A stretch of 64,000 nt of DNA. Source: Haliotis rufescens (Eukaryota). The notes under the pieces were generated by a model that was given only the letters and a program-made list of their open reading frames with translations, was not told the DNA's origin and ran no database searches. A program made the translations under genes and the position numbers. Shown in pieces: positions 36,901 through 63,845 of this stretch (its first letter is position 1; each line of letters opens with the position of its first letter). Location of the stretch: positions 34,348,001-34,412,000 of the forward strand of contig NW_025963813.1 of NCBI RefSeq assembly GCF_023055435.1, in the 5' to 3' direction.

Positions 36901-39096
36901 TTGTAAATCCGTGGGGATTCCGGGTTCAAACAGATCCCAAGAAACCTATGCTTGTCGTAAGAGAAACCTATGCTTGTAGTAAGAGAAACCTATGCTTGTC
37001 GTAAGAGAAACCTCTGCTTGTCATAAGAGGCGACTAATCGAAATGGTTGTCATGCTCGTTAATTTCCCTGAATTCGTATCATCGTTCCACAACGGCACTT
37101 AATGATCTCGAGATACATGTAGCTAGCGTATGTGACATGACCATCACAAAATATCCGCTATCTATTCGTTAAACAAAGCAAACCAAGGCGCGTTCTGTGA
37201 ACTCCTTAAGTTCCATGTCCTTCCTTATTCCGTTGAAATGACTAACACGCCATCGCCATATTTTATTACACAGTACACATACCAAATAAACAAAATAACC
37301 TTATATCAATACTATCGTTTATGTATGTAAGGAGAAACGTTATGTGAATATTGGTACACTTAGCTTCACATTCGCTATTCATTAATAGCATGTTTTTCTT
37401 CTTGAAACTGGAATTAAATAGTATCAGAAATGTTGAGGTCACCGCGAACAGGTGCCTGCAGTGCCCCAAATATAAATCGTCACGATATGGCTGAAATATT
37501 GACGTAAAGCATTAACTCACTCACACTCACACCCAAATATAAACAGCAGTGCAGTAATCCTACAGTATATGTATCAGCTATCGGCCGTCATTTCCGTGAA
37601 TATGCCGGATCATTTGACGGAGTTATGTGCAGGGGTCACATCCAGCTGGGACACGAACGACGCCAGACTTACGGTACGTGTACGCTATTTTCCTATTTGA
37701 AACAATTAGTTAACGCCGTCTGTCTGAGTTTAGCGGCCGTTAAAAACTTGTCCCCAGCAAATCTAAATCGCTGACTGTGTATATCCTAAGTGAATTAAAC
37801 TCATTAAGGATTGATTAATCACTGTATCCTTCTTATACCATTCTTCTGTCCTCATGTACCGATGTACATTACTTTGTACTAACCGTTTCCTTTCTTATGC
37901 TAGCACTTTTCATTAATAGAATGTTTTTCTCCTTGAAACTGGAATTAGATAGTATCAGAAATGTTGAGGTCACCTTGAACAAGTGACTGCAGCGCACCAA
38001 ATATAAACAGCAATTCAGTAATCCTACAGTATGTTCTTTCTAAAAGAGCAAAAACGGCCATTATGAACGATTATTATTTTTTATCATGTGGTATTTTACG
38101 CTGTTTGTGTCGTAGGATCTGTTTGATGTCGTGTATCAGGAGTGTTGGTGCCATTCGATGTTATATTTGACAATGTGCTTGCTTATATTTGACATGTCTC
38201 TGTGATTAAAATGAATAATCATGAATAATCAACCCAATTGTGAGCAAAAAGGTCTTTCTCATCTGTAAGACGGTGGCACGGGTGGCCCAGTCGTCTAAGG
38301 CGCCGCAATTCGATGTGCAGAGTTGCGTCCCTTGGGCACGTCAGAAACCTTTGATTGTGGATCCGAATCCTGAATCGCCCCGCTTATGTTTCTAGGTTAG
38401 TCAGCACCATACCAATGCTCGTGGGTTTCACCGAAGTGGTAAACGTCTGAGACCTGCATCACTTTGGGCTTTTCCTCCCACATTAAGCTGACACGCCGTG
38501 ATATAACTGGTATTCTGTCAAAGGCGGCGTTAAACCCAACTCACTCACTCATCTATAAGGGATCTTAGAGTTTTGACACCGGATGGTGTTGACAAAACAC
38601 CATTGCACAGATGGATCTGGTCACGTGTTCATGAACGTTGGTGGAACGGGCGTTTATTCCTAGAATGTGATGACGATTCTCCTGATGAACAGCAAATTCC
38701 GCTTTAAATAGAAAGAAGGAAGTTTTAGATGTCAATCAATGATCTCCTAAATGAGGACATCTTTTACCCAACCGGGTTTTCTTAGTGTCATTGGGTTAAA
38801 CATTATGTAAGGGATGGGCTGTTCTTAGAATCAAGGTTTACTTTAAAGTTCTTTAACAACACAATGATTAAATGACAGAAAGACCTTGTGTGGCGTGGAT
38901 ATGTGTTACTGATATGTTTATTGTTTAATAATATTTTAACGTACAAACATCGAACGGCTGCCATACTTAACACAATGTATACATTTTCGTATTCTTCACG
39001 GATGGGGTTGTAGTCCAGTGTTCAAAGCTTGAAATTGATACCAGTGCGTTGCCGCCGTGATATAACGTGAATATAAATGAAGCTAAAACCGGCGTA

Positions 39097-42982: not shown

Positions 42983-44171
42983 TCCCGTTCGTCCCGCACC
43001 TAGTTTGGTTACAACAAACCCAATCAATTGTAAACCCATTATGTGTGGTATTTCTATGGGAGATTGGACCCTGGCTATTTGTACATGTACATATATATAC
43101 ACATCCATATGATTGTAGGTTTAACTTGCCAAGTCTACAGTATACATTAACATGGACTATTGAATATACAAATATGTAGGCTAATGCTGCATTCAAAAAC
43201 TATTCCTTGCTTATATTGGATATTTATATTTTGTTGAAACTAGTTGCACCTACACTTACCTATGAACATTTGTGTCTCACTGATCTATTATGCACAAGCA
43301 TTCTGATTGGCTGTTCACAAACTCGCCAAGCTGCCATTATATATTACTGTCGGTCTACTGGTTTAGAAGTATGCAGAGACACATATATCGAGCCTAAATC
43401 CTCAGACGAAAAGAAGTTAAATACAATTTAGTTTTATATAAATAAACGCTATGCGGTACAGGAGACTCAGACTAGCGTAGGTCCTATTGCCTTTGGTGTT
43501 TACACTGCACTCCGTCATGCGTAGTATACAGCCTTGACCTACTAGTATCTTATCCCGCTGCAGAAGGGAATAATAGCGCGGACCGTGGATATATACATAT
43601 GTCAGCCCTTGCGCGGTGTCCTGAGGTCAGTATACACACAACGTAATATTATGTTGCCTCTGTGTGACATGTTGTACCCAAGACGGCCCATATACTGGAC
43701 ACGCTATTGTAACTGGACGATATCTATCGTGTAAATGCCAATACTTAAAAACAATGTAAAAGACATGGGCCATGCATGTGTGTGAGTTAATGTATAGTCT
43801 GACATCGTTAAGACTGTACACTTGCGTTGGATGACGGACAAAACGCAAGGTTGTGACGGGCTCAACACAGGGACAATATATACAATACGCGACTACACTT
43901 ATTTGAGGTCATCCGTTCCAGTCAAGGCGTCTGGATCATTCCCGCGCACCCGCCTTGCGTGGGTAACGATCAACTACACGCATTCAGGTCAACGTACGCC
44001 TGTATTGACCCGTTTCACTGACTGTCTACCTCATAATGGATGTACGGGTGTCCTAAAGTAAACGTTCATTGTAGAAACCAAATCTGATGACCTGGATGTT
44101 TAAATGTGAACGCTTTAGCGTTGATTTCAAGTGCAGATACAATGTAGCTTTAGGTGGAATTGAATTTGAAT

Positions 44172-44200
44172 TTCCAGGAATGACGTCACTGGGTTTTTCC
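44172..44200 (+). promoter_or_regulatory. Compact GAS + CRE + kappaB-like motif cluster upstream of SAM gene 1
   Basis: TTCCAGGAA (44172-44180), TGACGTCA (44181-44188) and GGGTTTTTCC (44191-44200) lie almost back to back, about 100 bp before a donor CAG|GTAATA at 44302/44303. Confidence 0.5.
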
Positions 44201-44407
44201 AATGTATTATTAGTAACTGAGCTGTCGTTTCACTATGTCCATTGTTGTTAAATGAATGTAGGTGTACAAGTGATCTATTATCGCACTAGGCTAGATTGTC
44301 AGGTAATATCTGTTTTCTGGGTAACGCAGTGAATATAGGCTGTGGCTCTTACTTCTCTTTGTCTTGTAGCAGTAGGAAGTTTTATTGTTTTACTCTACTT
44401 CAGCTGG

Positions 44408-47400
44408 ATGAAGAAGATGGAGAGACTACCGGGATCTATAAAATTAACAGGGATGTCTGGAGGGCAGGCTACTTACAGCAATGTGGCTGCGGTGGTTGAA
44501 GGGGGGATGGGAAACACCTATCACGGGCCGCAACACAAAGGTAACTATTTTCGTAAATGCATTTTTTGTTAAAGATTGACCATTTCGATTAAATATGATA
44601 TAGAACAATACATAGGCTAGGTCACCAATGGAAACAATGTATATGACGCACTCATCTGAGTAAATATGGAAAGAAACATTATTTGAACGATTGAATTGAT
44701 TTCAGTATAGGCTAATGTTACACTTGCAATGTGTGTAAATGTGTGTAAATTTGTTCAGTGGAAAAGACATACCACAACAACGTGAGCGGCAGCACTGGAG
44801 TGACGACCGTCAATGAGGTCACAGGAGACACGGTCAACATTGGCAGCAGCAGCAGCAGCCCATCCCAACAACCAGCGTCACAAACTGCATCTCAAAGTAG
44901 GGCTCATATATTTATCTATGTTTAGAGAACATATCGAATACCAAACGAGCTCCCGTGTAATACCAATTTTATGAAACGAGTGAATAGTTCTGGTATTTGA
45001 CGAGCGAAAGCGAGTTTCATAAGATTTCTATTAAACGGGAGCGAGCTTAGTATTATATTTATTACTCGCCATTTATAACGTTTTATAGAATTTCACCGTC
45101 GTGTATGAATAGGGAGACATCTACACGACCCACAACATAATCCTTTTGAGTTTAACAGAATACACCTTCAAACAAGTCAAACGGTGACGCATATTAATTT
45201 AATACCATACAACGGCCCTCCTTTAGAACTCAGGCGTCCGTTCCACAAAGTTATCGTAGCGCTAAGGTTATCGTAACTTACCTACTTTAACAGAAACTTA
45301 CGACGGCCGTTGCGCTACAATACGATCGCCTTGTGGAACCACACAGTTTACAATCGCGTAATGAAACAATGACGTACTTTGTGGAATCTTGTTGCAATAT
45401 CCACCGGCGACACAATGTCATGTGGGGTCAGTCCAACAACAGGGTTGCTGAAGTAGTTGAGTGTGCATAAGCTCCTCTCGTTGATCTATCATCTCCTCAC
45501 GCAATGTCGTTGAACAAGCCAAGTGATGTTGGGAGTTTTCAATATTTGTCAGTGAACGTGTTCCCGCAGTAATCAAGCACGGGGTTTGGTATAACGCAAT
45601 GTGTAATACAGCTGTATGTTTATAATATGGGTGATCTCTTCCCGGGCAAGTAATAAATCTCCTTAACAGATATAGGGCCGCGTTGAAATACGATTGTTAA
45701 GCGCTGCGGTGAGTGAATAGTCGCTGTGGCTATATATTCTGCACCTACAGTTTGTGTACAGTCTAAACAAGTCCATGATGTTGGTCGTTTCGGTCTAGGT
45801 TATATTGAAATGAGGAAAACACATCATATGTAGAGGTCACGGTAGCACAATACTGTACAAGGATTACAAGGAAAAGTATTATCTTCATATTTCAGTGTAG
45901 CTATCTCCATTACCCATCATTAAGATGGGTATTATTAGACTTCAACTCGTTAACATTCAAAAACATTTCGAATGTATTTGGGGGGCACGGGTGGCCCAGT
46001 CGTCTAAGGCGCCGCAATTCGCTGTGCAGAGTTGCGTCCCTTGGGCATGCCAGAAACTTATTATTGTGGGTTCGAATCCCGGTTCACCCCACATATCACG
46101 GCGTGTCAGCTTTATGTTGGAGGAAAGCTCGAAGTGATGCAGGTCTCAGACGTTCACCACTTCGGTGAAACCCACGAGCACGGGTACGGTGCTGACAAAC
46201 CTGGAAACATAATCGGGGCGAACCGGGATTCCAACCCACAATCATAGCTTTCTGACGTGCCCAAGGGACGCAACTCTGTACAGCGAATTGCAACGCGTTA
46301 GACGATTGGGTCACCCGTCACACTATTTAGAATGGCTCTCCATATGTGTAGTTTACCTAAGTACCCATATCAGCTGTGATAACACCATTGTCAGACAGAC
46401 ATGGCATATATACTCACCGCCAAAAGAAACGCGAACCAAGAAACATATAGAGAAGTATGTACCTTGAGAAGAGATGTTTCCAATGTGTACCACTTAATGA
46501 CAAAAGTAACAACCTGTAAAATGCTACCACCGTGTCTTTATTCTCATGACGATATGGTGCACGTGATTTTCAAACTTAACACGCTAATCCTGCACGAGAC
46601 AAAAAGTGCAGCTCGAGTCACGGATCTATGGCGTCATGTGTGATGTTCATGAGAGTAGGTTCATACAGTATACCAGTATGTTCGTTTGTGCACGGAACCA
46701 ATCTCATATCTGTTGAATATGAGTAGTTCTTCATGTATTAACCAACATTTATGGTTTTCACGTGTTTTCTGTCGGTGTGTTTCTGTACATATATGTATTA
46801 AATGTTTGATAGGCATTACTTAGAAGTTGACGGATGATAAGGTAGACAAAATTTTACGGATAACAACTTCTTTAATACTGTAAAAAACGACCTGTCGGTA
46901 TAGATCCTTATACCGTTGTCAAGCAAGACTGCATGAGGGACATGGTACAGAATATATATAGCACACAGTACACCTACTATATATATTCTGTACATGTCCC
47001 GTTTTCAGTCTTGCTTGACAACGGTATAAGGATCTGTACCAAAACGTCGCTTTTTACAGAGTTAAATAAGTTGTATCCATACAATTGTGTCTACTATATA
47101 TGAATTATTATTCGGCATAAGGGGTATATCTCTAAACCAGAATGTTGTTTAACGTATATATGATTTAACACACATGTCGAATCATATGATAACATCTACT
47201 GTTTTCCACAGTTCCAGGTCCAGCCTTAGAGCTGATGACAGTTGAAGATGTTCAGGATCTGATGACAAGAGAGCGTTTTCCTGAAACCACGAGAAAAACA
47301 TTTGAGGAAAATGGCATTGATGGCAAATACTTCGTGAAACTTTTAGAAGTGGGCGTTTTGGAAGAGCTCGGTGTCACGTCACCCCTTGCTAAAATGAAGA

Positions 47401-47441
47401 TAAAAACAATTCTCGAAAATCGTTCCAAGAAATCTAGTTGA
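44408..47441 (+). CDS. SAM gene 1: amyloid-like N-terminal modules + C-terminal SAM domain (3 coding exons, 166 aa)
   Basis: Exons 44408-44540, 44759-44896 and 47212-47441 have GT-AG boundaries, are all phase 1 and total 501 nt. Protein: MKKMERLPGSIKLTGMSGGQATYSNVAAVVEGGMGNTYHGPQHK|VEKTYHNNVSGSTGVTTVNEVTGDTVNIGSSSSSPSQQPASQTASQ|IPGPALELMTVEDVQDLMTRERFPETTRKTFEENGIDGKYFVKLLEVGVLEELGVTSPLAKMKIKTILENRSKKSS. SAM signature: TVEDV...F.ENGIDG...L.ELGV. AATAAA follows at about 47640. Confidence 0.8.
46803..47095. mobile_element. Palindromic Penelope-like terminal fragment in intron 2 of SAM gene 1
   Basis: Same sequence family as 18519-18730, with inverted arms around a short spacer. Confidence 0.55.
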
Positions 47442-49533
47442 CTGCCCCATTGATGTTCGCCTATCATTCGGGTCCACTATGCTTCATCCTTCACCATCTC
47501 ACGACATGACATGGACCGTGAACGATGACAATCTTTGTGGCTTCAGTGTTATCAACTGTCATTCATGACATCCAACGATTAATTGTTTTAATCAAAGTAC
47601 ATATTTGTTACCTGATTTTCATCGACTCATATTTTATCAAATAAATATTATCTATTTACTTCAATGTATGCATCACTGTTGTGTTTTCAAGTGTGATTGC
47701 GGAATTAATTTTGGATAGATTGATCCGGCTCTGTGTTTGTTTGTTTGTTTGTTGTAACAACAGGCCTCCAGGTAGGTCCGCGCTTAAGGCTTTATTTTAT
47801 TTCAAGTGTGTTAGTGTGAAGGGTTTGTCCATTACTTATTTGTTTGTTGCTTAATGCCGCGCTCAGCAATATCACAGCTATATGACGACGGTCTGCAAAT
47901 AATCAGGAGGACCAGACAATCCATTGATTGACAACATGAACATTGATCTGAGCAATTGGGAAACGATGACATGCATCAACAAAGTCAGCGAGCCTGACCA
48001 CCCGATCCCGTTAGTCACTTCTTCCAAGAGTAGTTGCTCCCTAAGACAAGCATGGGTTGCTGAAGAGCAATTCTATCCCGGTCAGGCGATGTGACGGGGC
48101 TTGGTGCATGCGGGACACCGTAAGCATTGGTCGTTTCTCATGATTTTTGGGACCCTATTGTCTTCAAGCAACCGTAGCATCATTCACTCATTCAATCACT
48201 CATTCACTCACTCACTCACTCAACCCACCCACGAAACCCACTCGCTCACTCACTCACTCACCAGTCAAGTCCCCGAATGAATTTTAGGTGTTCGCAAAAC
48301 GATGAGCGTTCCCGTCACAAACACATGCAAGGGCATATCAAACGTCAAACGTATGACTGAATACGTGCACGTGAGTAACGTACCAGGTGCACCATCATTC
48401 CACCTTTTGACTTGCAAAAAAAAACGCAACCTGGCTTTGTTATCTAACACTTGACCCAAATTTTACATTCTGAAAATCGTTTCGCACAGGACACTAAAAT
48501 TAGATCCTTGTCATCAACAGATTTACTTCCTGCATGTACATTTGTTGGCAACTGATCAAATGTCAAAAGAGTTGACAGCCTATGCGAGTGGTAACCTGTC
48601 CACAATGGAAAATCTAAATTCGGAGTTGTTGTTGGAAATATTTTCCGAGAAATGTCATGGGCGTTCCCTGAGAAAAGTAGATCCACGTCATGGAAATAAA
48701 AATAAGTCCATGTCATCAGAAATCAATAATGTCAACACTATAGACAACTGTCACTTCGCTAAACCTACAAAGAAACCAGACGTTCATGATATTCGTCCCC
48801 ACAAAGGTAATACTTTATTTCATGAGCAATTATTCAAAGTAATTAAATGCTGAGGTTTTTATTAAGGAGTTGAAACTAAAAAGAATGTAAAGGCATATTA
48901 TAACCGATGTAGTTGGAATGTTGGAATTATTCCAATCACACAAACACTTTTTGTTTATTTTCAATTGTAATGTCATCAGGGTATGCAGTTTGGTATATTA
49001 AACAAATAATTTACGGATCAAAAAGTCGTTTATAGACATTCTGCTTTTATTGAAGAACAGGTAACTTCAACACAACCAAGCACATGCACGTCAAAACGTC
49101 CTGGGGCCTTACGATACATGGCATCTGTAGTGGTCTGGTGTGGGGACCGAGGTTTCATCTTTGTACAGTTGGTTGGCTGGTAGTTTTACGCCGCACTCAG
49201 CAATATTCCAGCTATATGACGGCGGTCTGTAAATAATCGAGTCTCGACCAGACAATCCAGTGATTGATATCATGAGCATCGATCCACGCAATCGGGATCG
49301 ATGACAAGCATCAACCAAGTCAGCGAGCCTGACCCGTTAGTCGCCTCCTACGACAAGCATAGTCGCCTTTTACGGCCAGCATAGGTTGCTGAAGGCCTAT
49401 TCCACCCCGGATCTTCACGGGTCTCTTCTTACAGGACAAGTCGACTTCGGGATAACGAGGTTACAGAACAGTCTGTAAATTGTTTACCACTGTGGTCATA
49501 ATCTGAAGGATCTGTTATATTGCAGGTTAAACA

Positions 49534-50983
49534 ATGGCAACAATTACCGTGACAGGGGCAGACGGAAACGCAAAAATAAAGAACTCAAGCGTTACTGGGA
49601 TTCAAAACAGTAACGGAAAACTTCCATCACAGAAAGGTATGAATTGTTTATTTATCGTTTAATATAGTCGCTTAAAATAACAAACAATAGAATACGACAT
49701 ACACTGTATATGGACAAGCTGTTATGCTAAAGTCTGGATGCCCTACATAGCCAGTTCGTAGCTGGGTCTTCGGCGTTACGAGCGAACGCTTTAACCACTG
49801 GGCTACCCGACCGCCCCCGAAGCATTTGATTGTGTCAACTCATGATATGATTATGGAAAAGGGTTTGTGACTTTTTTTCATTTTTTAAGTATTACTATTA
49901 TTATAATCTTAAATAAGGTTAATCATATATTCATGAGAATTATTTCTTCTATTCACCAGATATCAGGAAAATGGAAGTGACGGGTGTCAAGGGTAATGCT
50001 GAGGTAGACAATTCTGTCGTTGCCGGCATTAATAACGGCCAAATGGGATCTGTTGGTGAGTTTATGTATTCGCTGGAACAGATCCTTATACATTACCATG
50101 TTAATATGGTTGGTCTTTCATCCAAGTATCAATAAAATCAAGAAACGTAATACCATTTGAATTAGACAATTGACTCAATCGGTTTTCTATCTCCACACAT
50201 TGAAATCATCATCGATATCAGTAATAATTTATTCCAGAAAACAGGCAGCAAACATACAATATTGGAACTGCCCACGGCGTCGTAGGTGGGCAGGACATGC
50301 AAGGCGCATCTGTGAATCAAGGGGGAATCACAGGGCCAAGATCAGGACCCATTGCATACTTCAAAGGCAAAGGTAATTATAACATTACTGTTAATCTGCT
50401 GTGTTATATGGATCTTTGAACCGCTAATATTTCATTCCGGGATCAATACTTCATCGGGAACCGAAATATGATTAGCTATGTACACATCTTTGCTGAAAGG
50501 CTCCAACGTTTCTAAAACGAAATTATGTACAAGCGAAAATGAATCACTTCTACACTACAAATAAGTGTCCTTCAAAAAGTATTCATAGATGCTCCTGAGA
50601 CGGAATACTATTAATACAGAATCACTGATCTTAAGGAAATATGCTTATCATAAATTGTTTAAAAATAACTGATAACACTGTGTACCATTGAAACCATCAG
50701 TAAAGCTTCAACGTGACGTAACCTTTGGGTTTTGGCTTTTATTATGAAATATATTTACGACTCCGTTTGCCTTCCAGCTCGTTCGGACATCTCTGAGGAG
50801 GACATTGTTGGTCTCCTACAGGAGAAGAAGCTAGAGAAACACATTCCACTATTCGAGAAACATGGCATTGATGGGGATTTATTGTCTCAGCTCAACGAGG
50901 ATGAACTCAAAGCAAACTTTGGCATTGACGACTCGTTTGAAAGGAAGAAAATACTGAATCTAAAGAAATATATCCCTCAATAA
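49534..50983 (+). CDS. SAM gene 2: three amyloid-like modules + SAM domain (4 coding exons, 179 aa)
   Basis: Exons 49534-49636, 49960-50055, 50238-50372 and 50778-50983 are GT-AG, phase 1 and total 540 nt. Protein: MATITVTGADGNAKIKNSSVTGIQNSNGKLPSQK|DIRKMEVTGVKGNAEVDNSVVAGINNGQMGSV|ENRQQTYNIGTAHGVVGGQDMQGASVNQGGITGPRSGPIAYFKGK|ARSDISEEDIVGLLQEKKLEKHIPLFEKHGIDGDLLSQLNEDELKANFGIDDSFERKKILNLKKYIPQ. An upstream non-coding donor lies at 49060/49061. Confidence 0.85.
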
Positions 50984-52178
50984 TATATTCGCTCAACCAT
51001 CTCGACTGTTAAAAGATCATATGTAATGGATTGTCTGTGTCGATGCTATCAATGTCATTATGAACTATCAAAAGGCTTCTCACTGTAGTTGGATCAACAT
51101 ACTCTTCCTTTATCATTTGAACAGTAGATTTTGCATTGCCTCATGCTATCATCCATCATTACACAATAAACATTAGATCTGAAAACAGTGTTGTTATATG
51201 GGACATGAAAGTTCTGAGAATAAGTAAACAACAATCATACTATCCCCGTTCCCATTAGCATTCATGAAAAAACATTAGTACTTCAACTGAGTGAGTGAGT
51301 GAGTTGGGTTTAACGCCGCTTTCAACAGTATTCCAGTTATATCACAGCGTGTCAGCTTAATGTGGGAGGAAAGCCCGAAGTGATGCAGGTCTCAGACATT
51401 TACCACTTCGGTGAAACCCACGAGCACGGGTACGGTGCTGACAAACCAAGAAACATAATCGGGGCGAACGGGGATTCAAACCCACAATCATAGCTTTCTG
51501 GCGTGCCCAAGCGCGCACCTCTGCACAGCGAATCGCGGCTCCTTTTGACGACTGAGTGAGTGAGTTGAAATTTTAAGTCACATCGGCGATATTTCAGCCA
51601 TACCGTGACTCCTTAGACGACTGCCCCCTTCCCTCCTCTCCCCCCCCCCCCCCCCCCCCCAATCCCCCTTTCCTTCTAGTTCGACTGAAGAATGACTATC
51701 TGTAGAAAATGAAATGTGTAGAAAATGTAGCATGTTATACTAATTAATGCTACTGGTGGGGCAGGACATGCTTACCCTTTTCCCGAGCGCCTGGTGTTAC
51801 ATCACTGATTTTAAGTGGTCCATTCATAAAAGCTTCACAGCTATTTGGCCCTTTAGGCAAAACCTTTTTCGGTGGATAATCAGGGCTGCATTTTTGTGCA
51901 TTGCCATTTTATAATTGCATATTACATCATGAGCACACATCAGATGAACAGACCACATCAATATGGCTCGTCCAATGGGTATACAGATCATTCATAGTAA
52001 AAACTAAACGTTTGCCATTCAATATCAATCCGTAAGTTGACACTAGCGATACACAACCCTGCTCTTTCTGCCTGACATCAGCCTAGATATCTATGACCTA
52101 TTTGTAACGTAAAACATGGTGATAATACCTCATCAGACGTAAAGCTTGAGTTGTCTTCCTTTCATGCTATTCATAACC

Positions 52179-52224
52179 TTGCGTCATTTAAGGAACGTAT
52201 TCCCGAGAAATATGGCTATAAATA
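52179..52224 (+). promoter_or_regulatory. Putative promoter of SAM gene 3 (CRE/CEBP-like, STAT-like, TATA)
   Basis: TTGCGTCA (52179-52186), TTCCCGAGAA (52200-52209) and TATAAATA (52217-52224), then a donor AAG|GTAGGT at 52302/52303. Confidence 0.5.
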
Positions 52225-52571
52225 GATCCATGTCAATGTGTTAACATGTTATACCGGGAATGATAGTGAGGCTCATAACGCGAAGGGCCCTTCAGATTCA
52301 AGGTAGGTTGACTTCCTTGTCATACACAGCTCTGTGTTATTAAAGTTTAAACCATCCAACAGCGGAGTATAAAAAAGAGATAGCATGTCTTCCGCTCGTA
52401 TATAGCCACCATGTAGACACAGTTCGTAATCTAATTTGTTTGTTTGTTGTCCAGTTTGTCAAAAGGACACAACAGTTAGACGATGAAAAACCACGAGAGA
52501 AGCCTGTTGCAAATTTTGGGCAGTTATATTGCATATCATAGTTGTTTATCTTTTTTTATTCAGATTACAAA

Positions 52572-54725
52572 ATGTCAAAGTATGATATCACAATGAAGGG
52601 AGGTGAAGGCACGACGAAAACGACCAATATGGCTGGTATCGTCCACGACGGGATGGGTAATACCTACACTACCAACCACAACCAAGGTAGTCAACTGAAA
52701 GAGTTTTTGTTCACTATTTGTAACATAGACTTAGTGTCCTGTGGATATATCCCTTTGCTGTTCATATCGATGTCATATTTTGAAATGTTCCATTTAACAG
52801 GGGCGGTCGGTTAGCCTAGTGGTTAAAGCGTTTGCTCGTCACGCCGAAGACCCGGGTTCGATTCTCGACATGGGTACAATGTGTGAAGCCCATTTCTGGT
52901 GGCCCCCGCCGTGACATTACTGGAATATTGCTAAAAGCGGCGTGAAATCAACTCACTCACTCACTCCATTTAACGATTCAAATAATTAAAAAAACACAGA
53001 TTCATAATAAATGTCATACATTAATGTGGTAAAAAAAGACATATATACATTATTTGGCAAGAATATTTCGTTATTTACTGGATTTAAAAAGAAGACAAGC
53101 ATACTGTTTTAACAGGGCTAAATTGAACTTGAAGGACATACAGCATTACATGGGTAACATTGCTAGCACTACGAACACTGGACGCTTATCTCCTTTCTTC
53201 AATACATAAAATAAACGGGAACACTTTGTTTGTTTTGGAAAACACTATGTTAGCTGACCTATGTCTCTTTAGCTATTTTTCGATCTGAATAAATGAAACA
53301 CCCATAGTAGTCTTTAAAAGAAATAAGGCCCTGGACATATGCGTGTGCTCAAACATAATTTTATAACATCATAATACTTAAGTTGCACTGAGAGTGTGTA
53401 GCACCTTTTAAGACAATTAAGAGCGCCTTGAAAGATTTGGTTATATAGCAAGCGTCATTATTATGTCATAGCAGCTCTCATTGCTAGGCATTTATTACGC
53501 GACAGTAGGTGAAAGAAGGGAGCCAGAGCCTAGCTCTTTGTTGTCCCTAAAACTTGAAATACTATACCTTAATTAGTCTATTGTTCTCATGTTTACGGCT
53601 AAAAAGGTATTGCAACATATTTTGAATATTGAATAATTATAAATTATACACAATCCCTTATAAACCCTTTCCATATTGATAAGAGGTCTCTTTAAAACTA
53701 TGAATCAGCAATTGGTCAATATGCTAGTTGCGATGACCAAACAAATAATAAAGACCAAATGAGGATAGCGATTCGCAGGAACACATCCTCCAACATTACA
53801 CGGCTAATATGGTTGGCCTTGCATCCATCACATGTAGCAAATAAAATCAAGATTTGATATCGAATTTAAAAATTAACTGAATTGGTTTCCTATCTCCACA
53901 CATTGATCTAATCATCATTAACATTTCATTCCAGAAAACAGGCAGCAAACATACAATATTGAAAATGCCCAAGGCGTCGTAGGTGGGCAGGACATGCGAG
54001 GCGCATCTGTGAATCAAGGGGGAATCACAGGGCCAAGATCAGGACCCATTGCATACTTCGAAGGAAAAGGTAAATTACTGTTAATCATCTGTGTTACATG
54101 AAACTTTGAACCGCTGATGTATCATTCCAGGATCAATACTTCATTGATAGCCGAAATATGATAAGCTATTATCTTTGCGGAAAAGCTCAAACGTTTTAAA
54201 AACGAAATTCTGCACCCGTATTTATTTTAACTAATAAGAAAAAATATGTTTACTTCTGCACTACAAATAAGTATCCTTCAAAATGTATTCATAGATGCTC
54301 CTGAGACGGAATACTATTAATACAGAATCACTGATCTTAGAGAAACACGCTTCTCATGAATCGTTAATAAGAAAACTGATAAACAATATTTTTTAACCAG
54401 CGCCACAGTGACATACTGTTTCATTGTGTAACATGAAAACCATCAGAGAGCTTCAACGTGACATAACGTGTGGGTTTGGGCTTTTATTATGAAATATATT
54501 TACTACTAAGTTTGCATTCCAGCTCGTTCGGACATCTCTGAGGTGGACATTATTGGTCTCCTACAGGAGAAGAAGCTAGAGAAACACATACCACTGTTCC
54601 AGACACATGGCATTGATGGGGATTTATTGTCTCAGCTCAACGAGGATGAACTTAAAGCCTTTGGCATTGACGACTCGTTTGAAAGGAAGAAAATACTTAA
54701 TCTGAAGAAATTTCTTCCCAAATAA
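52572..54725 (+). CDS. SAM gene 3: two amyloid-like modules + SAM domain (3 coding exons, 150 aa)
   Basis: Exons 52572-52686, 53935-54069 and 54523-54725 are phase 1 and total 453 nt. Protein: MSKYDITMKGGEGTTKTTNMAGIVHDGMGNTYTTNHNQ|ENRQQTYNIENAQGVVGGQDMRGASVNQGGITGPRSGPIAYFEGK|ARSDISEVDIIGLLQEKKLEKHIPLFQTHGIDGDLLSQLNEDELKAFGIDDSFERKKILNLKKFLPK. Confidence 0.85.
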
Positions 54726-57700
54726 TATATTCGCACATTCTTATCGACAATTTAATGAACATGTGCAATGCACTGCCGTGCCGATGCGATGCATGCCAAT
54801 ATGAATTATCTGATGGCTGCTCACTGTATTTAGATCCACAGACACTTCCTTTATCATTTGAACCTTAGTTTTAGCATTGCATAATGTTATCATCCATTAT
54901 AACATAATAAACGTTGAATTTGACAACAGTGTTGTCATATGGAACATGACAGTTCTGAGAATAAGGAAACAACAACAATCATCTCACCCCCCTTCTACGA
55001 ATAAGAAAACAACAGTCATATCATCCACCTTCTCATTCGTATTCATGGAAAAAATACTTCTGCAAATTAAGATCGATTATTTGTAGAAAATAGAAACTGC
55101 AGTGTATGTTTGGGTGCATAAGTAATGCTAAAACTGTGATATGTTATAATAATTACTAGCCTTTTATTGCAATTTATCATCCAAAACTGATAAATCTCAC
55201 ACTCATGTCTTTTGATATAAATTATATCAACACTCGTTTTCCACTTTCATCAATTTGTGTTGATAAATTTGATTTTGATGAGCGTGTTCCCTATTGGTTG
55301 AGTTGTCTGTATTGTATGTGAAAATCACATATTGGAGAAGTTCTTCATCCGTAGGGACACGGATGGCGCCGCGATTTGCTCTGCAGAGTTGCGTCCCTTG
55401 GGCACGCCAGAAACCTACGATTGTGGGTTTGAATCCCGGTTCGCCCCGATTATGTTTCTAGGTTTGTCAGCACACTCTGGTGAGATTATCTTTATCTTAA
55501 GATTTTGATAAGCGTGTTCCCTATTTGTTGAGTTGTCTGTATTGTATGTGAAAATCACATATTGGAGTAGTTCTTCATCACTAGGGGGGTTGGGGGGGAG
55601 GGGGGGCACTTTGTTAATTAGGGGGCACGGGTGGCCCAGTCGTCTAAGGCCCCGCGATTCGCTGTGCAGAGTTGCGTCCCTTGGGCACGCCAGAAACCTA
55701 TGATTGTGGGTTCGAATACCGGTTCGCCCCGATTATGTTTCTAGGTTTGTCAGCACCATACCCGTGCTCGTTGGTTTCACCGAGGTGGTAAACGTCTGAG
55801 ACCTGCATCACTTCGGGCTTTCCTCCCACATTAAGCTGACACACCGCGATATAACTGGAATACTGTTAAAAGCGGCGTTAAACAGAACTCACTCTCTTTC
55901 TTCATCCGTGGTCCAAATATTTCGAGTAAACGTGGTCTAAATTGTATTCCACAGTTGGTTGCAAAACGAATACACGCTTTACACTTTTTCCTTTACTTAT
56001 AAGCAAAAGAATCTCTGTACTGGTACAAAGTAGGCTTAATTTCATTTTCTTAACGGATCGGTTTTCTGATTCATCTATCACTTGATTGTCTGGCCTGTTT
56101 TCAGGCTGCCGTCACATGGCTGTGCGGCGTCAGGTAATGAATGCTTGCTTGTTTATGCAACTGGTGTGAATGCCACTGGACATGCTTACCCTTTTTGAGA
56201 ATACCTGGTGTCATCACTGATTTTCACTAGTCCATTCATAAAACGGTCACAGCTATTTTGCCCTTACGCCAAGTGGAGTCTGCTTCGGTGGATATTCAAC
56301 ACTGGTTATTCTCCTTTGCATTGACATTGTACATTTACATATTTTATGCACCTCCTGGTTACTTTCGAAGTTCATATAATACTGGTTAAATAAGATTTAA
56401 TCCAGGTGAATAAAAGCGACAAAACCCTTTCCATATTCATGAGAAGTCTCTGCCACAAGCAATGTCGATCTTGAATCATATCAATTCGTGTCCAATGTTG
56501 AAGATTTGTTGTGAATAACTTCAATAATATCTCCATTCACTCAACAACAGTTAGAGAATCTTTCAATACACCTACACTATTCAAAAGCCTTCAACTACTC
56601 AGTGTGGGACAATGTGACTGATTTATTTATACCCTGCACGGTCATAGTGAGGGTTTTGCAATGGATGAATGCATGCTCTCCTCAGGAAAGACTGAATCAG
56701 ATCACTGTGAAGGGGACACATAAATATAGTGTTTTAAACCGTCTGGTGGCGTTATTTCAGAACCTGCAGGTGAAAACATTTTGACGAAGTTTTCAAAACA
56801 GCATTTCTGATTTCAACGACTTAAAACGACAATTTCTGAACCTATATCTACATCATCATATTTTTATGCACCACAATGGTATGCACGTCAAAAAGGTAGC
56901 ACCCCGAAAGACATATGTCTTTTCTGTGTGGATTTTCATTGGTACAAATCGATATTTCTGAATCGAGAAATACGTGCGTCAATATATGTTACCCTTAGGG
57001 TTATACAAATTCGATCCTAGAATAACCTGGCTGTTAAATGTATCACTGCCTCTTTTCTTAAATCACTTTTTCGTCTTGTGTCTTCCAAAAATGTCAGTGT
57101 CAAATAACCATCCAAATATCGACAGCCAATCGAACGCAATTGGGAATCTAAGTCAGTGTATGTCAAAACGTTCATTATATGTGACATCATAACAAAGCAG
57201 TTCAGCAGTTTTTTACGTCTTTTTTCAGTTGGGCCATCATTACCAGTCGTCGCCCCTTCTGCACACCGGGAGTGTTACTAAACAAATACAACTCGTGATT
57301 GAGCCACATTCAAAACAAGAGACAAAAAAATCCATTTGCAGTTCGTATCAAAAACAAATGCAATAACACAGCAGTTATTTCAAATAGATTTCGTGGAAAG
57401 ATTTCAGTGTCACTATCTGTTTCGGATTACATACACTTAAAAAAACCAGTTAGGGATCATAAATCTTTCAGGGGACAGTTGGGATATTTTTTAAACAGGT
57501 ACAACTCGTGATTGAGTCACTTTCAACAGAGAAAAGACCTCTCGTTCGATTGAAGGTTTAAATTCGCTTATCACTGAAATGATTGTGAAGAAAGATATCA
57601 GTGTCACTATCAATCTCTCGTGATGCTGATTTCAAATATACTCACCACTTAATTGAAAGCGTCAACAAAAGGGAATAATCAGTTTCCTTAATGTTTCTGT

Positions 57701-58428
57701 TATGATTTGGTTTGTTTGTTTGTTGTTTAACACCGCACTCAGCAATATTCCAGCTATACGACGGCTTCTGTTATGAGCACACATGAGATGAACCGACAAC
57801 ATCGATAGCGTTCACACAATAGGTGTACAGTCCGTTCCTACTTAATACTAAACGTCTGCAATTCAATATCAACCAGTTGGTTGACACAAGACTCACACAC
57901 CCTTGCTCTTTTTTGCCTGATATAAGCCTAAATAATCATATGCTTTTTGTCATTTGAGACATGATGTAAGTCAGTGATGACATCAGAATTGAAGTTAGAA
58001 TTGTTTTTTATTGACACAAATCATGACGTTCCGTAATTTACGGAAGGTATTTTCCAGGAAAGTGGTTGTAAATATGTTAATATATGATGACTGGTATGTA
58101 ATAGCGAGGCTCATTGCATGAAGAGCCCTTCAGGAGCAAGGTAGGTTAACCTTCTTGTCATACACAGATCTGTGTTTTTTTAAGTTTAAACTTATCCAAC
58201 AGCTTTGATATAATAAGAAATTAAATGTATTCCGCTTGTGTGTAGCCACTAGTAGACATTTGGTCGTAGCCCAGTATGTGTATTTCTGTTCCAGGTTGTC
58301 AAAAGCGCAATACAGTTCGACAATGAAACGCCATGATAGAAACATGTTGAAATGTTGTCGCCTATTCTGTACTTGTGACGTTATATCGCTCATCATGCCT
58401 GTTTATCCTTGTTTATTCAGAAAACAAA

Positions 58429-60324
58429 ATGTCAAAAATCACAGCTACGGGAGTTGCAGGCGGCACGGTGGAAAAGTCCAATGTTGCTGGTATTAATTAC
58501 GGCGAGATGAGCAATAGGGTCACTACCACCCATAACCAAGGTAGTCAACTCAAAAAGTTTACGATTAATAACATAGGTTTAGTGTATTATGCATTTTTAT
58601 TACAATGTTATGTTCATTGAAATGTCCTTTAATTATTGTTTTCAACAACACCGACTAATCACGTATATATTGCACTTTAATGTGATGAAAAAAACCAACA
58701 TGACATGTATTCATTATTTATGTATAATTCGTTATTGGTATATCATTTTTAACTGATTTAATGAGGAACCATCATTTTGGCACCCGGTATTCACAATTAT
58801 TTTCCATTAAACACATAATCATATGACGGAAGATGGTCATTATCGAATAATAATCATAGACCTAGCTAGATATATTGTAGTCCGAACAAAAGTATTTTCT
58901 TCATTGTCATCCTATAATTTTGTGACCGTCAACATGGCCTTTGGATGAGAGTTGGGTGCCACAACAGACGACTTAATGTCTCCCAACATATACTTTAGTA
59001 TTCTTTATCCTCAAGTCGCATTTACGACACGCATTCTAACTTGTTAACACAAAGTTAGTACCTCTAAATACAACTTAGCAGACCTTGAAAGGTTTAGCTC
59101 TATTACACAAGCCACAATAATGTCGTCACAACGCTCATTGAAAACATTTGAAGTCCCAGCTCTCTGTTGTCCACAAAACTTAGTCGACTGCTAATGTGTT
59201 TTCTGCTGAAAATGTATTCCCATTCATGTTTTGAATATTAAATTATAATAAACAAAAGCAACAAGAAGAAATACAGAGCTCAATGTACGATGCTGGGAAG
59301 ACCACAAGCATGTGTTTATAAATCAAACTTTGGTCAATGCATTCGTTGTAAAATACTAACAAGTATTAAAAGTAATTTATATTCAATCCCAATATGTAAT
59401 AATATGTACATTTTACATTCCAGGAAGTCGACAAATCACAAACCAAGGTAATATAGGTAATATTGCCACAGGTGATAACCACAGGGGGAATATGGCTGCT
59501 TCAGTCGGTGGCCAACCTGCAGCTGGTGGCACAAGAGGTAAGGCTTGTCAAGGACGGATCTTCTTTGTTTGCTGTTTAACGCCGCACTCAGCAATATTCC
59601 AGCTATACGACGGCGTTCAGTAAAAAAATCGAGTCTGGACCAGACAATCCAGTGATTGACATCATGAGCATAGATCCACGCAATTGGGATGCGATGACAT
59701 TCATCAAACAAGTCAACTAGCCTGACCACCCGATCCCGTTAGTCGCCTCTAACGACAGCATAGTCGCCTTTTACGTTAAGCATTGGTTGCTGAAGGCCTA
59801 CTTTACCAGGGATCTTCACGAGTCTACAGGACAGATCTCTATTGTATTACAGCCGAAATTCATGTATACATTAATTTGATATTTTACACTGTTGACCTTT
59901 TCTCAAATTCAATTGTAATATGTTTTGCTTTTATAAACCCATGGTATATAAGATATATATCCTTATGCGATTACTATTGTGGGTATTCAATGGTGTGTTT
60001 GTCAAACTGGTTTCTTTTATAAATCTTCGGGTAAATGGTTCTAATGAATACAATGTACTCATGATAATACTTGTGACATCGAGAGGCATACCTGTAATTG
60101 ACATTATTCATCTTGAACAGATCCTAGAGCACTCACTCCAGGAGAACTGATAAACCTTCTGAGGGAGCTCCAGCAATGCGGACACTATTAAGAGTTTTGA
60201 GACACATAATGTTGACGGGCGATTGTTCATGGACCTAGATGATGAACTTCTTGTCGATCTTGAGATTAACAGCAGGATAGAACAAAGGAAGCTCAAGCGT
60301 TGAAAGGAAGACCTCATTCAGTGA
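58429..60324 (+). pseudogene. SAM gene 4: intact N-terminal modules, frameshifted SAM exon (pseudogene or truncated form)
   Basis: Exons 58429-58540 (MSKITATGVAGGTVEKSNVAGINYGEMSNRVTTTHNQ), 59424-59537 (GSRQITNQGNIGNIATGDNHRGNMAASVGGQPAAGGTR) and 60121 onward (DPRALTPGELINLLRELQQCGHY*, stop at 60189-60191). The SAM core continues in the +1 frame as SNADTIKSFETHNVDGRLFMDLDDELLVDLEINSRIEQRKLKR*KEDLIQ*. Confidence 0.75.
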
Positions 60325-63300
60325 ACTGGATTTACATTACCAAAGAAGCAAGTGAATAACTGTGTTCGCCTTCTCGCTGTGGATACACTTCGCAGTGAAT
60401 AGGAAGGTTTGCAAACATAAGTCCTCATGAAATATAAAAAATAAGCCAATTTCGTTTATTTAATTGTATTTTGTACTTTTCAAATATTAAATAATACACT
60501 TGCATTTCTGCTGCTGTGTTGTGTTTGTTTTTCAATGCAAATGAGCCCTCAGGAGATTACAACTTGAGGGCTAGCTGGCCGTGTCCTCGCATGCCAACAA
60601 TTTGAATGACTTTCGCATTTATAGAAAAAGTACTCAAATGATCAACACCGGGATATCAAAACACATATGAACTTCATCCCTTAAAACCAATGACATGCGA
60701 TTCTATTCTTAATTGCTGACATCGAAACAAGATCACTTTTTGTGTTGCTTTGATTTTCAAGGTGTATTAATTGACCCATTTATCTTCAATTCCTCAGGAA
60801 AAGCTTCCTGGTGCGTCCGAAACATATTGCACGGTCTCGGTATAAAAACTTCTTAGCCATCGTATTTGCGAATTCATGATGCATACTGATACGACAAGCA
60901 TCCGTTGCTGAAGATCGTTGCCACGTTGGGCACCGTCTGGTTCAGACTTGAATGGGTGATGGTCGATATTGGACGAATTCCGTCACGAGTTATTGTAATA
61001 TTCGTTGTCAGATTTATCAGATTGTGTTTAAGCTTAGGTTATCTTTGATTGGTTTTATTCTGCTTTGAGGTTACATCCAAACACCGGAAATACAAGTTGT
61101 TAATGACCGAGGGTTGTTTTTCTGACATGATGCATGTAGAGGTTATCGTGAAATTATGATGCTATTATCGATCTTTCACCCAACTTCGTACATCCGTTTC
61201 AGTGGGTGATACAACATATGACATAAAACTTTGTGTTGTTTCACATATTGTTTTTTTTAAATATTTATCCACACATGCTCCCCTGAGCATATTAAAAACA
61301 CATTGATATCGGTTATTACTTACATATTGACGAGTTTCAAGTTGCAAAAAACTCTTCTTTTATTTAAAATCTCTGTATTGTCCTTTACATATGTATTTAT
61401 AACAACAAAGTTCGTGGAAACGTTACACTTTTCAATAACATTGACTAACGATGGATCTATTTATAATGATTACTTTGATACCCCGGCTCAGTAGTAGTCA
61501 GCAATGGATTCGTAAGCATGGGACCTATGGTCTATTTTAAGTTGTTTTTGTATCGCCATGGCTGCAATATCGACTATAGCGTATTTTAACACGCTGTACA
61601 TTACAATAGTGAATGATATCGATTATGTCATGAATTATGATTGCAGCCCTTCAGAAACATGGATGTGTATTTGTAGTTGAAGATAACATCCTAGGGCGAC
61701 AGAATGTACAAACTTTTTCGGTATATGTCCTTGAAGGTTCATCTAAATCTGGAACACATTTTCCAAAGTAGAAGGATGTCCAAATCTAGTCCATACTGAT
61801 CCATACTTAGTTTCCATACAGCTCAAACTTTTAAAGTACAAAATATTTATTTCATGTAATATCCCAAACAGTGTCAATCAAAGAATCAATATATCAAGTA
61901 TATTTTTGTATAAGGCATTGGGCCAATGTACAAAAGAAATGAACAAAAAGGTTCCACTTTAGTAAGTTTCTAAATTTCATGGTTCTCAAGTATACACATA
62001 AGAGGCACTTAATACTCGAAAATTCTCGAAATTCGACCCGTGAAGATCCGGGGTAAAGGCGCCTATGCTTGTCGTTAGAGGGGACTAACGGGATCGGGTG
62101 GGTTGCTGAAAACCAATTATCCCCGAATCTTCGTAAGTTTATGTAACCCATACAAATTAATGCCAAATGATGATGTTTTGTTGTGAGCACCTTAAATAGG
62201 ATTTTCTTTAACTCCAGGCATTTAGAGAAAAAAAATTTAACACACCCTTCACTATTTAAACAATCAACAACCTTTCAGTGCTGGAGGATGTTACTCATCT
62301 ATGTATTCCAGTACCGTCATGGTTAGACAGATCCTCAATGTGTGATTCACTTACTCCAACAAAACAGAAAAAAACTACCCTGTTTATGTATGTTTATACA
62401 TACTGGTTTAACTATATAAACACTTCATTTCCTTTTACGTGGATCCGTTTAGGGAGATATATAGTGTTCAAAAGCTTTTCCTAACCTCAATGTAAGGCAT
62501 TGTATGTTTGAAGACCACTTCTCTTTCACAGAAACCGTCTATTCTTCTATTGGCCATGATATATAATCATTTACTAAGGAATAACAAATTACTGGTAGTT
62601 TTCGTTCAGTCAGCACGCGAGAAGACCTTATCCATAAAGACGATTCATTTAAGCATGACAGTTTTCATGGAAAATTTACGTTTTTTGTGTGACCAACACA
62701 CCTTCTATCATACACGCAGCAAAACCAACATTCCATAAATGATGATAACTTGTTATCTGTTTTCTCTAAATGTAGGGATTCCGGTGTTAGAATATGTCCC
62801 AAGCAACTTTAGTTCTCGGTAGGAGTGAAGCATTCAAAACCAACATTTCTGATTCTGTATCTCACAATGAATTAAAACGACAAGTTTCCGAATGTATTCA
62901 AGCGTCAACACAATGCTGTGCACATTCCCGAGGAACGCAATGAATGGGTTAATCGATATAAATGAACGGGCTCTGGGATTGACATGCACAATGTGTTACC
63001 TCAAATAATGTTGAAACGTATGAACTTATTCAGATAAAATTTAAGCATACACAAAGTTTACCGTGCTAGTATTTAATCGATAACATACAGCAAAGTGTAA
63101 GTCAGTTAATGTGCCATAACATAAACATAAATTTAAATCCACGTCACGTGCACGAAACTAAAAATAAGTCCATGTCACAAAAAATCAATAATTTCAGTAC
63201 ACAGACTACTATCACATCACTAGGATACAAATACCAAAGCAGCCAGGATATTTGTTCCGCAAAAGGTAATGCTTTATTTCATAAGTAACTCAACTCAATT

Positions 63301-63742
63301 AAATAAGAAGACCTTTATGAAGGAGTTGAAAGAGAGTACAATTTAAGAATATATCAGAACCGATGTGGTTTTGATTGACATATAGTTTTGAATGTTTGAA
63401 TTATCGACAGCTTATTCCAAAGCGGACACGAATTGTTAACTTTCGTTTGTAATGTCATTAGGGTATGCAGGTTGGCATTTTGATTAGTAATTTGTTTATG
63501 GATTATTTATTTCCATACCATAAACAATCTGTATTTACTCTTATTGAAGAACATGTAACTTCAACATTATCGGCACAACAATGTAATGACGCTCGATACA
63601 TGTTAGGTGCCACAGTGTTGGACATATAAATCAACTTCTGCAGGTCAAATCTACTTCGGAATAACCAGGTGTTAGTACAGTCTGTAAATGGTGTACCAGT
63701 GTGGTTGTAATGTGTGTGTTCTGTTTGATTACAGGTTGAACA

Positions 63743-63845
63743 ATGGCAACAATTGAAGTGACAGGGGTAGACGGAAAAGCTAAGGTGAAAAACTCAAGAG
63801 CGGTTGGGATTCAAAACAGTGACGGAGAACTTCCATCACAGATAG
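63743..63845 (+). CDS. SAM gene 5, first coding exon (paralogue of gene 2; continues beyond window)
   Basis: Acceptor TTACAG ends at 63734. Protein MATIEVTGVDGKAKVKNSRAVGIQNSDGELPSQI ends at a phase-1 donor G|GTATAT, the same 103-nt length as gene 2 exon 1. Upstream 63130-63740 is colinear with 48680-49530. Confidence 0.8.

Follow-up and report, generated by a model that had tools for sequence, protein, structure and literature searches.

What could a tandem run of small genes do in an abalone, when each of them encodes short Gly/Asn-rich units followed by a single SAM domain? This question was raised by a 64,000-nucleotide stretch of the Haliotis rufescens genome, hereafter the window (NCBI RefSeq assembly GCF_023055435.1, contig NW_025963813.1, positions 34,348,001 to 34,412,000 of the forward strand), for which a sequence-only reading had proposed adaptors that couple amyloid nucleation to SAM oligomerization, perhaps in innate immunity or cell death. 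By combining six-frame open reading frames (ORFs), tblastn, and manual exon models, we placed five paralogs (G1 to G5) at 44408-63845 on the plus strand, with every intron bounded by GT-AG and in phase 1. The best-supported reading, which we advance tentatively, is that the N-terminal units may be a homotypic beta-arch assembly motif coupled to SAM oligomerization. This reading was reached because the units fit the published criteria of amyloid signaling motifs at the class level, because a disordered monomer contrasts with a stacked multi-unit prediction, because the N terminus is under constraint, and because phase-1 exons have carried the module into two or three further architectures, among them an NLR-like cassette region.

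The proteins of this family are 141-249 amino acids (aa) long and consist of one to five exon-sized units in a row at the N terminus and then one C-terminal SAM domain. Two kinds of unit were distinguished, "modules" of 31-44 aa and "X" units of 37-45 aa, and each unit corresponds to one symmetric phase-1 exon. Given that all introns are in phase 1, the internal exons are symmetric 1-1 cassettes of 96, 114, 135, or 138 nucleotides (nt). A- and B-type modules are combined with the X2 and SAM2 exons and C-type modules with the X4 and SAM4 exons, and mixed genes also occur, namely G3 (C+X2+SAM2) and LOC125371694 (A+B+B+X2+X4+SAM4). Synonymous divergence (dS) between G3 and its paralog G8 is 0.10 in SAM and 0.43 in the N-terminal part, which fits exon-level recombination. 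The modules begin at protein residues 1-10, in A-B or A-B-B layouts with a Pro-containing linker ending exon A. As the sequence-only reading had stated, neither a signal peptide nor a transmembrane stretch was found (maximum Kyte-Doolittle 19-residue mean, 0.25-0.83), and scans with the whole Pfam-A library listed SAM alone, with no enzyme domain in the family.

The window holds the 5′ portion of a tandem array that is restricted to Haliotis. When 70 kb downstream of the window were read and the units there modeled, the array was found to extend about 60 kb 3′ of the window, to approximately window coordinate 123300, and to total about 80 kb. Thirteen exon sets were counted, two of which are joined by RefSeq into one gene, giving about 12 units, about nine of them intact and several decayed; the broken sets, about four, are G4, a SAM2 remnant after G5, a truncated module before "G6," and G10. 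When the 1.33-Gb genome was searched in six frames with the family profile, 17 module exons were detected (E values, 5e-14 to 3.5e-10), all in one cluster on the window contig, so that the observation is far above chance. A further G13-like copy, comprising a module exon and a SAM4 exon, was seen on a small unplaced contig (C357:118779-121027) and is a haplotig or an extra paralog. Among 1.84 billion representative proteins, a profile search returned family members or exon-1 fragments only, besides a 1918-aa repetitive protein and a 564-aa repeat protein, whose matches were partial and repeat driven and were treated as spurious. All named members belong to H. rufescens, H. cracherodii, or H. 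asinina, and the architecture is kept in all three species; four short database fragments hint that further species have it. In H. asinina, a gene with four tandem X4 units has isoforms with three or four of them (XP_067659247-50, differing by one 36-aa X4), and one isoform begins inside the X2 exon of the neighboring gene, suggesting cassette skipping and read-through splicing across the array. Literature searches by LOC and XP identifiers, for RHIM or amyloid in bivalves, and for SAM in Haliotis yielded no description of this SAM family.

To what class do the N-terminal units belong? The N-terminal 78-181 residues consist of 63-76% G/N/T/S/V/A/Q/I, with Gly at 15-21% and Asn at up to 12%, and contain 0-2 Leu, 1-5 Pro, and 0-6 aromatic residues. 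In an alignment of 17 modules, a Thr is invariant, a Gly is near-invariant, and the N-S and G-M-G positions are conserved; Lys is not depleted in the A and B modules. The N-terminal part had no match in Pfam, among PDB sequences (module and X profiles gave chance rows or nothing), or in the ESM Atlas, and no relation between module and X exons was detectable by hhalign. Published amyloid signaling motifs are about 25 aa long, rich in G/N/Q/V/I and poor in P/L, with conserved Gly and Asn and a position at the protein terminus; they can comprise two or three pseudo-repeats with short Pro/Gly linkers and are carried by the N terminus of a STAND protein and by a small partner. The abalone units share their length, conserved Gly/Asn, hydrophobic-polar pattern, and N/G/V/I/Q-rich and P/L-poor composition, and like them sit at a terminus as tandem pseudo-repeats joined by short Pro/Gly linkers, but receptor and partner genes are not adjacent. 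In animals, only RHIM-type signaling amyloid motifs are established, and whether RHIM is the sole metazoan signaling amyloid is an open question (Prion 2021, PMC7889193).

The likeness does not extend to a named family. The Pfam RHIM model (PF12721; cut-off, 20 bits) matched no exon and no full protein at E values up to 10. A six-frame genome search with this model placed four canonical VQIG sites (27.8, 25.5, 23.7, and 20.2 bits) outside the cluster and no site inside it, and X exons and modules reached hhalign probabilities of 0.9% and 0.15%, respectively, against the abalone's own VQIG RHIMs. Specific RHIM or HET-s kinship was thus not supported at the sequence level, given null Pfam scans and, for RHIM, noise-level profile-profile scores, and the resemblance to RHIM is one of class, not of family. 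The sequence-only reading was therefore borne out on amyloid-motif likeness as far as length, composition, position, and repeats are concerned, and not on kinship; the Pfam check that it had suggested likewise returned SAM but no RHIM. The four canonical sites, of the RHIM-type form N..VQIG..N.M, lie at C35:4328554, 4289066, 19245429, and 6864065, two of them being near-identical and 40 kb apart.

Evidence for constraint came from comparing H. rufescens with H. asinina orthologs, which are 89% identical in the X2 exon, 72% in SAM, and 61% in the module. Because X2 conservation exceeds that of SAM, the N terminus is no free-drifting linker. The most constrained N-terminal piece is the exon adjoining SAM rather than the first-exon module, on which the sequence-only reading had laid the emphasis; the module also occurs elsewhere in the genome, as described below. 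Between the deepest paralog pairs, dS is saturated and nonsynonymous divergence (dN) is 0.28.

Predicted structures indicated how the units might assemble. The H. asinina protein XP_067659248 comprises one module, four tandem 36-aa X4 units, and SAM. In its best AlphaFold2 model, residues 40-176 form strands with a period of 36, three strands per unit, at a per-residue confidence (pLDDT) of 70-75, and the leading module stays below 35. This model hints that X units may be able to form beta-solenoid rungs. A four-copy prediction for residues 1-78 of XP_071111848 scored 0.02, which is evidence neither way.

The C-terminal domain was identified with confidence. Of the intact members tested, only G1 and the H. 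asinina protein with four repeats fell short of the Pfam cut-off for SAM (PF00536 or PF07647), and SAM4-type paralogs reached 20.5-29.9 bits on SAM_2. AlphaFold2 predicted a five-helix SAM fold at pLDDT 84-89, for which VIA-align gave Z 12.2 against 3bs5_B (CNK2/HYP; root-mean-square deviation, 1.6 Å over 74 residues) and Z 10.6 against SARM1/TIR-1. Other structural neighbors were DGK-delta, Shank3, and PHC3, with a Foldseek probability of 1.0 to many SAM chains, and the nearest solved sequences to the G2 SAM were the SARM1 SAM (E value, 2e-5) and then the ANKS6 SAM. The SAM domains of these neighbors, like those of ANKS3, polyhomeotic, and TEL, oligomerize, pair, or polymerize. Two RefSeq names proved misleading: "PPE62-like" for XP_067659248, in which the mycobacterial PPE domain is absent and Pfam gives SAM_2 alone, probably reflects the Asn/Gly-rich repeats, and "ANKS6-like" was given to a 151-aa H. 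asinina protein that has only SAM in Pfam and no ankyrin repeats.

Does the module occur outside the array? A search for other proteins bearing the motif, proposed in the sequence-only reading, was productive, since weak genome matches of the module profile turned out on inspection to be real relatives, namely the LOC124124938 family, exons on contig C334, and exons upstream of an nSTAND3-ankyrin gene. The LOC124124938 family (C46:438925-440037, with paralogs on C40 and C46) is Haliotis-only, carries two modules (27 and 14 bits), and appears in RefSeq as "caldesmon-like," "trichohyalin-like," or "egl-27-like." Its proteins have no Pfam domain and are composed of a conserved N terminus, acidic HVT..VTG repeats, the two modules, a Glu/Gln/Arg-rich stretch, and a Pro/Val/Ala-rich tail, with a short, basic, amphipathic-looking C terminus. 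The modules are the best-conserved part, being 84-92% identical between species when flanking windows are mostly 24-52% identical. A heptapeptide, IAYFEGK, is common to the LOC124124938 N terminus and the end of the SAM-family X2 exon. At C334:58.86-59.27 Mb, four module-like exons were found; at two sites the module exon looks like a first coding exon, and a conserved 320-aa exon without any Pfam, PDB, or Atlas match lies about 2.5 kb 3′ of it.

The third occurrence concerns a receptor-like gene. At C35:39309228-39309925 (-), the module is split over two phase 1-1 micro-exons, a and b, of which b is duplicated; the three exons span 39309881-39309925, 39309562-39309633, and 39309228-39309299. 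Their acceptors are of the polypyrimidine-AG type, their donors read GTATGT or GTAACC, and the b copies score 21.3 bits each. Read in order, a and then b look similar to the modules of G3 and G1 across about 30 residues, an unscored likeness. On the same strand and 3-4 kb further downstream is an nSTAND3-ankyrin exon at C35:39.305 Mb, which starts near C35:39306200; it is separated from a/b by a phase 1-1 exon with a VQQFG motif, about 2 kb downstream of the micro-exons. The visible start of the exon near C35:39.305 Mb matches the start of an nSTAND3-ankyrin ORF at C35:38.51 Mb, and the two loci are 89% identical across the NTPase query. The a-then-b pair was also found at C35:40.977 Mb (40976675) and C212:6.594 Mb (6594444), and a further module exon lies at C35:30.914 Mb. 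Over C35:39306001-39313000 (-), tandem units of about 270-330 bp each contain a phase-1 micro-exon a or b in near-identical acceptor context; these may be STAND cassette exons or may belong to a dispersed repeat. Given about 16 extra-cluster matches and about 277 STAND candidates, the chance of one such match lying no more than 5 kb upstream of a candidate in the same orientation was estimated at about 1%, a rough count made post hoc. As for the ORF at C35:38.51 Mb itself, it was seen at C35:38509001-38516000 (-) as an nSTAND3 NTPase with ankyrin repeats, in an open frame of 1112 aa, 809 aa of them within the region read; its NTPase family has more than 100 genome matches, including six copies 89-100% identical on C35. 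The exon before it contains VQQQIG and NLNIGG..NIG strings, with no Pfam RHIM match at E 0.1.

If these observations are taken together under the beta-arch reading, the units would be disordered beta-arch elements in the free monomer and would form in-register stacks with units of the same kind from other chains, or, when in tandem, with one another, giving a beta-solenoid or cross-beta assembly. SAM oligomerization would raise the local concentration of the units, or, conversely, stacking would seed SAM oligomerization, and the small SAM proteins, presumably cytosolic, could act as threshold-type assembly adaptors. The module might then allow homotypic recruitment or templating by other module-bearing proteins, the most attractive partner being an activated STAND (NLR-like) receptor. 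That the proteins serve innate immunity or cell death is only inferred, by analogy and from three features: the association with STAND, a SAM like that of SARM1, and the birth-and-death dynamics seen in the array. A bolder version of this proposal, which we consider unlikely, holds that the module, perhaps together with the X unit, is the first non-RHIM animal amyloid-type signaling motif, so that an expanded family of nSTAND3-ankyrin receptors, bearing it on N-terminal phase-1 cassettes, would once activated template the SAM adaptors and the LOC124124938 coiled-coil family, SAM polymerization would amplify the output, and a mollusc would run a relay of the fungal or filamentous-bacterial kind.

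Several points weigh against the beta-arch reading, which is built on genome sequence and predicted structures. The periodic beta-solenoid of XP_067659248 appeared in one of five AlphaFold2 models (mean pLDDT 64 versus 43-50 in the rest), from a shallow alignment of near-perfect repeats, and AlphaFold2 is prone to over-predicting solenoids on near-perfect repeats. G8, a three-unit paralog of G2, was predicted as a monomer to have no globular fold over residues 1-105 (pLDDT about 30), whereas the four-unit protein was stacked. HET-s prion-forming domain and other Pfam amyloid-motif models found no match in the scan with the whole Pfam-A library. Among young paralogs, the dN/dS ratio is 0.45-1.7 in the N-terminal part and 0.2-0.8 in SAM, with few substitutions, and relaxed constraint would look alike. 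The link to STAND receptors is a candidate one, since that the a/b micro-exons may be spliced onto STAND mRNA is suggested by genomic position; in the searches run, a module match lay beside only one of the six closest STAND paralogs on C35. Finally, about 4.9 Mb of the same chromosome separate the STAND locus from the array, so that receptor and effector are not close neighbors as they are in fungal and bacterial systems.

Some of these points would also suit another explanation, in which the N terminus is a low-complexity disordered tail without an ordered cross-beta state, serving as a linker, a condensate "sticker," or a linear-motif carrier on a SAM scaffold. The pLDDT of about 30 over residues 1-105 of a typical member, the absence of a Pfam domain family match, and the fast N-terminal evolution among young paralogs all agree with it. 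We nevertheless regard it as somewhat doubtful, given that positions and whole exons are strongly conserved (X2 above SAM), that modules are the best-conserved part of the unrelated LOC124124938 architecture, and that a strict one-exon-one-unit layout and near-absence of Pro would be odd for plain linkers. If the units do order, they could instead fold within one chain into a soluble beta-solenoid or beta-helix of 2-5 rungs that binds a ligand or surface without templated polymerization. Two units, the number in most members, are too few for stability of such a fold, the three-unit G8 is predicted unfolded, and no structural neighbor of the beta part was obtained (the wide VIA search was filled by SAM, and the FapC and CsgA rows had probability below 0.1 and TM-score about 0.1), so that we consider this improbable, even though the four-unit XP_067659248 gave a periodic strand model, the composition is typical of beta-helical proteins, and unit number varies by exon duplication and cassette isoforms.

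Two further explanations have less in their favor. The array might be a young, largely nonfunctional duplication product whose gene models are artifacts or poorly expressed, decaying copies, as about four broken sets among some 13 and an N-terminal dN/dS near 1 in recent copies could indicate. Such an account is very improbable in view of about nine intact reading frames of 3-6 exons each, the same architecture in orthologs of three species, the genus-wide conservation of the X2 exon and SAM, and a dN of 0.28 where dS is saturated in the deepest pairs. By eye, the N-I-x-N-x-x-G-V-V-G-G and I-A-T-G-D-N strings of X exons recall N...(I/V)Q(I/V)G...N, and canonical VQIG motifs exist elsewhere in the abalone genome; hence the motifs might be divergent RHIMs and the genes RHIM adaptors of a necroptosis- or IMD-like pathway. 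With Pfam RHIM silent at E values up to 10 and hhalign below 1% for both X exons and modules, this idea is barely credible.

How would the proposed beta-arch system compare with known ones? With the NLR-associated motifs of fungi and bacteria (HET-s/HRAM, PP, sigma, and BASS1-10), the abalone modules share the length class, G/N-rich composition, terminal position, and pseudo-repeats, but have no match to their Pfam models. There, the motif is on the STAND N terminus and on a small partner, whereas in abalone the module exons lie upstream of a STAND gene that is 4.9 Mb off. The partner domain is SAM in abalone but a HeLo/Bell-type membrane-targeting domain in those systems, the motif is N-terminal in the small abalone protein but C-terminal in known effectors, amyloid formation is a proposal here, and the host is an animal. 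In common with RHIM/cRHIM adaptors (RIPK1, RIPK3, ZBP1, and TRIF; Drosophila IMD and PGRP-LC/LE), the family has a short predicted beta-arch motif in a disordered context and a proposed homotypic assembly, but the modules lack the (I/V)Q(I/V/L)G core and are joined to SAM, not to a kinase, death, TIR, or PGRP domain. Among oligomerizing SAM proteins (SARM1/TIR-1, ANKS6/ANKS3, CNK/HYP, Shank3, polyhomeotic, and TEL), the nearest to the abalone SAM are SARM1 and ANKS6 by sequence and, by fold, CNK2/HYP, DGK-delta, SARM1, TIR-1, Shank3, and PHC3; unlike these proteins, the abalone ones have a single SAM without TIR, ARM, ankyrin, or PDZ domains, and their SAM oligomerization is presumed. Curli CsgA and Pseudomonas FapC likewise have tandem imperfect Gly/Asn/Gln-rich repeats, each proposed to form one beta-solenoid rung, but they are secreted bacterial fiber subunits, whereas the abalone proteins are cytosolic by prediction. 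In the Foldseek results for XP_067659248, CsgA and FapC alone among non-SAM entries ranked near the top, and these matches were rejected as unreliable (probability, 0.06-0.09; TM-score, about 0.1).

The gene models on which this account is based are as follows. G1 exon 1 (44408-44540, +) contains the start codon and a divergent module with the core NVAAVVEGGMGN (module profile E value, 3.5e-10) and ends in a phase-1 donor; exon 2 (44759-44896, +) is a phase 1-1, Gly/Ser/Thr/Asn-rich X-type exon, and the last exon (47212-47441, +) encodes a divergent SAM and the stop codon, yielding a protein of 166 aa. The G1 SAM scored 18.1 bits on SAM_1 and 17.3 bits on SAM_2, both sub-threshold in Pfam, with profile positions 4-58 of 64 covered. 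G2 (LOC124151571) has an A-type module in exon 1 (49534-49636, +), a 96-nt, phase 1-1 B-type module in exon 2 (49960-50055, +), X2, the best-conserved N-terminal element of the SAM family, in exon 3 (50238-50372, +), and a SAM2-type SAM (SAM_1, 41.9 bits) in exon 4 (50778-50983, +), for a protein of 179 aa. In G3 (LOC124151572), the module exon (52564-52686, +) carries a conserved ATG at 52572 and a C-type module, followed, in the manual splice model, by the X2 exon (53935-54069, +) and a SAM2-type SAM exon (54523-54725, +; SAM_2, 41.3 bits), giving 150 aa from the conserved ATG. The RefSeq translation of G3 starts in an upstream exon at approximately 52260-52302 (+) and adds 17 aa, unlike paralogs and orthologs, which begin at the downstream ATG.

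G4 comprises a C-type module exon (58429-58540, +), a 114-nt, phase 1-1 X4 exon with the core NQGNIGNIATGDNH (59424-59537, +), and a SAM4 exon (60121-60303, +) whose reading frame shifts near 60168-60180 and ends early at a TGA (60301-60303), where paralogs read on; it is a probable pseudogene in this assembly. G5 (LOC125371694) is represented in the window by exon 1 alone (63743-63845, +), an A-type module, and continues beyond it with B, B, X2, X4, and SAM4 exons, to encode 249 aa. G1, G2, and G3 are intact in the window. Acceptor-like sites precede even the coding first exons. At 38645-38725 (+), 5′ of the array, a weak SAM4-like remnant with an internal stop was detected (tblastn E value, 0.039), possibly a decayed copy.

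These models agree with the RefSeq annotation. LOC124151571 is identical to manual G2, LOC124151572 equals G3 plus the 17 N-terminal residues, and LOC125371694 equals G5 with its downstream exons; the RefSeq proteins map to the same exons at 100% identity, and all are labeled "uncharacterized protein." The shared splicing indicates that the splice models are right and that the genes were already annotated, and the view that they are recoverable only by manual splicing was mistaken. Of the sequence-only description, all five quoted modules were found in place, although the two at 49534 and 49971 are exons 1 and 2 of the single gene G2 and not five separate first exons. Five same-strand paralogs do exist, except that G4 is broken and the array exceeds the window. 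That complete copies consist of Gly/Asn-rich modules and a single SAM was confirmed by Pfam in G2 and G3, with a sub-threshold 18 bits in G1.

Outside the array, two overlapping ORFs at 26067-27034 (+) of the window resemble, by eye, parts of a carbohydrate sulfotransferase of the heparan-sulfate 3-O-sulfotransferase kind. Long ORFs of short tandem peptide repeats at 23650-24129 (+) and 35543-36566 (-) are most likely minisatellite DNA, not genes.

What, then, does the locus offer? The module is short (30-45 aa), exon-delimited, available in natural one- to five-unit versions, and fused to a well-understood oligomerization domain. With the same module in front of an NLR-like gene, the locus is a concrete and cheap test case for non-RHIM metazoan signaling amyloids. 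Should the modules not template one another, it would still be an uncharacterized, genus-restricted, rapidly turning-over cluster in a farmed and conservation-relevant animal. If they do, amyloid relays of the fungal/bacterial style would operate in abalone and perhaps in further molluscs whose STAND repertoires are huge, SAM would join the domains coupled to amyloid signaling motifs, and phase-1 exon cassettes would have spread a signaling motif between gene families.

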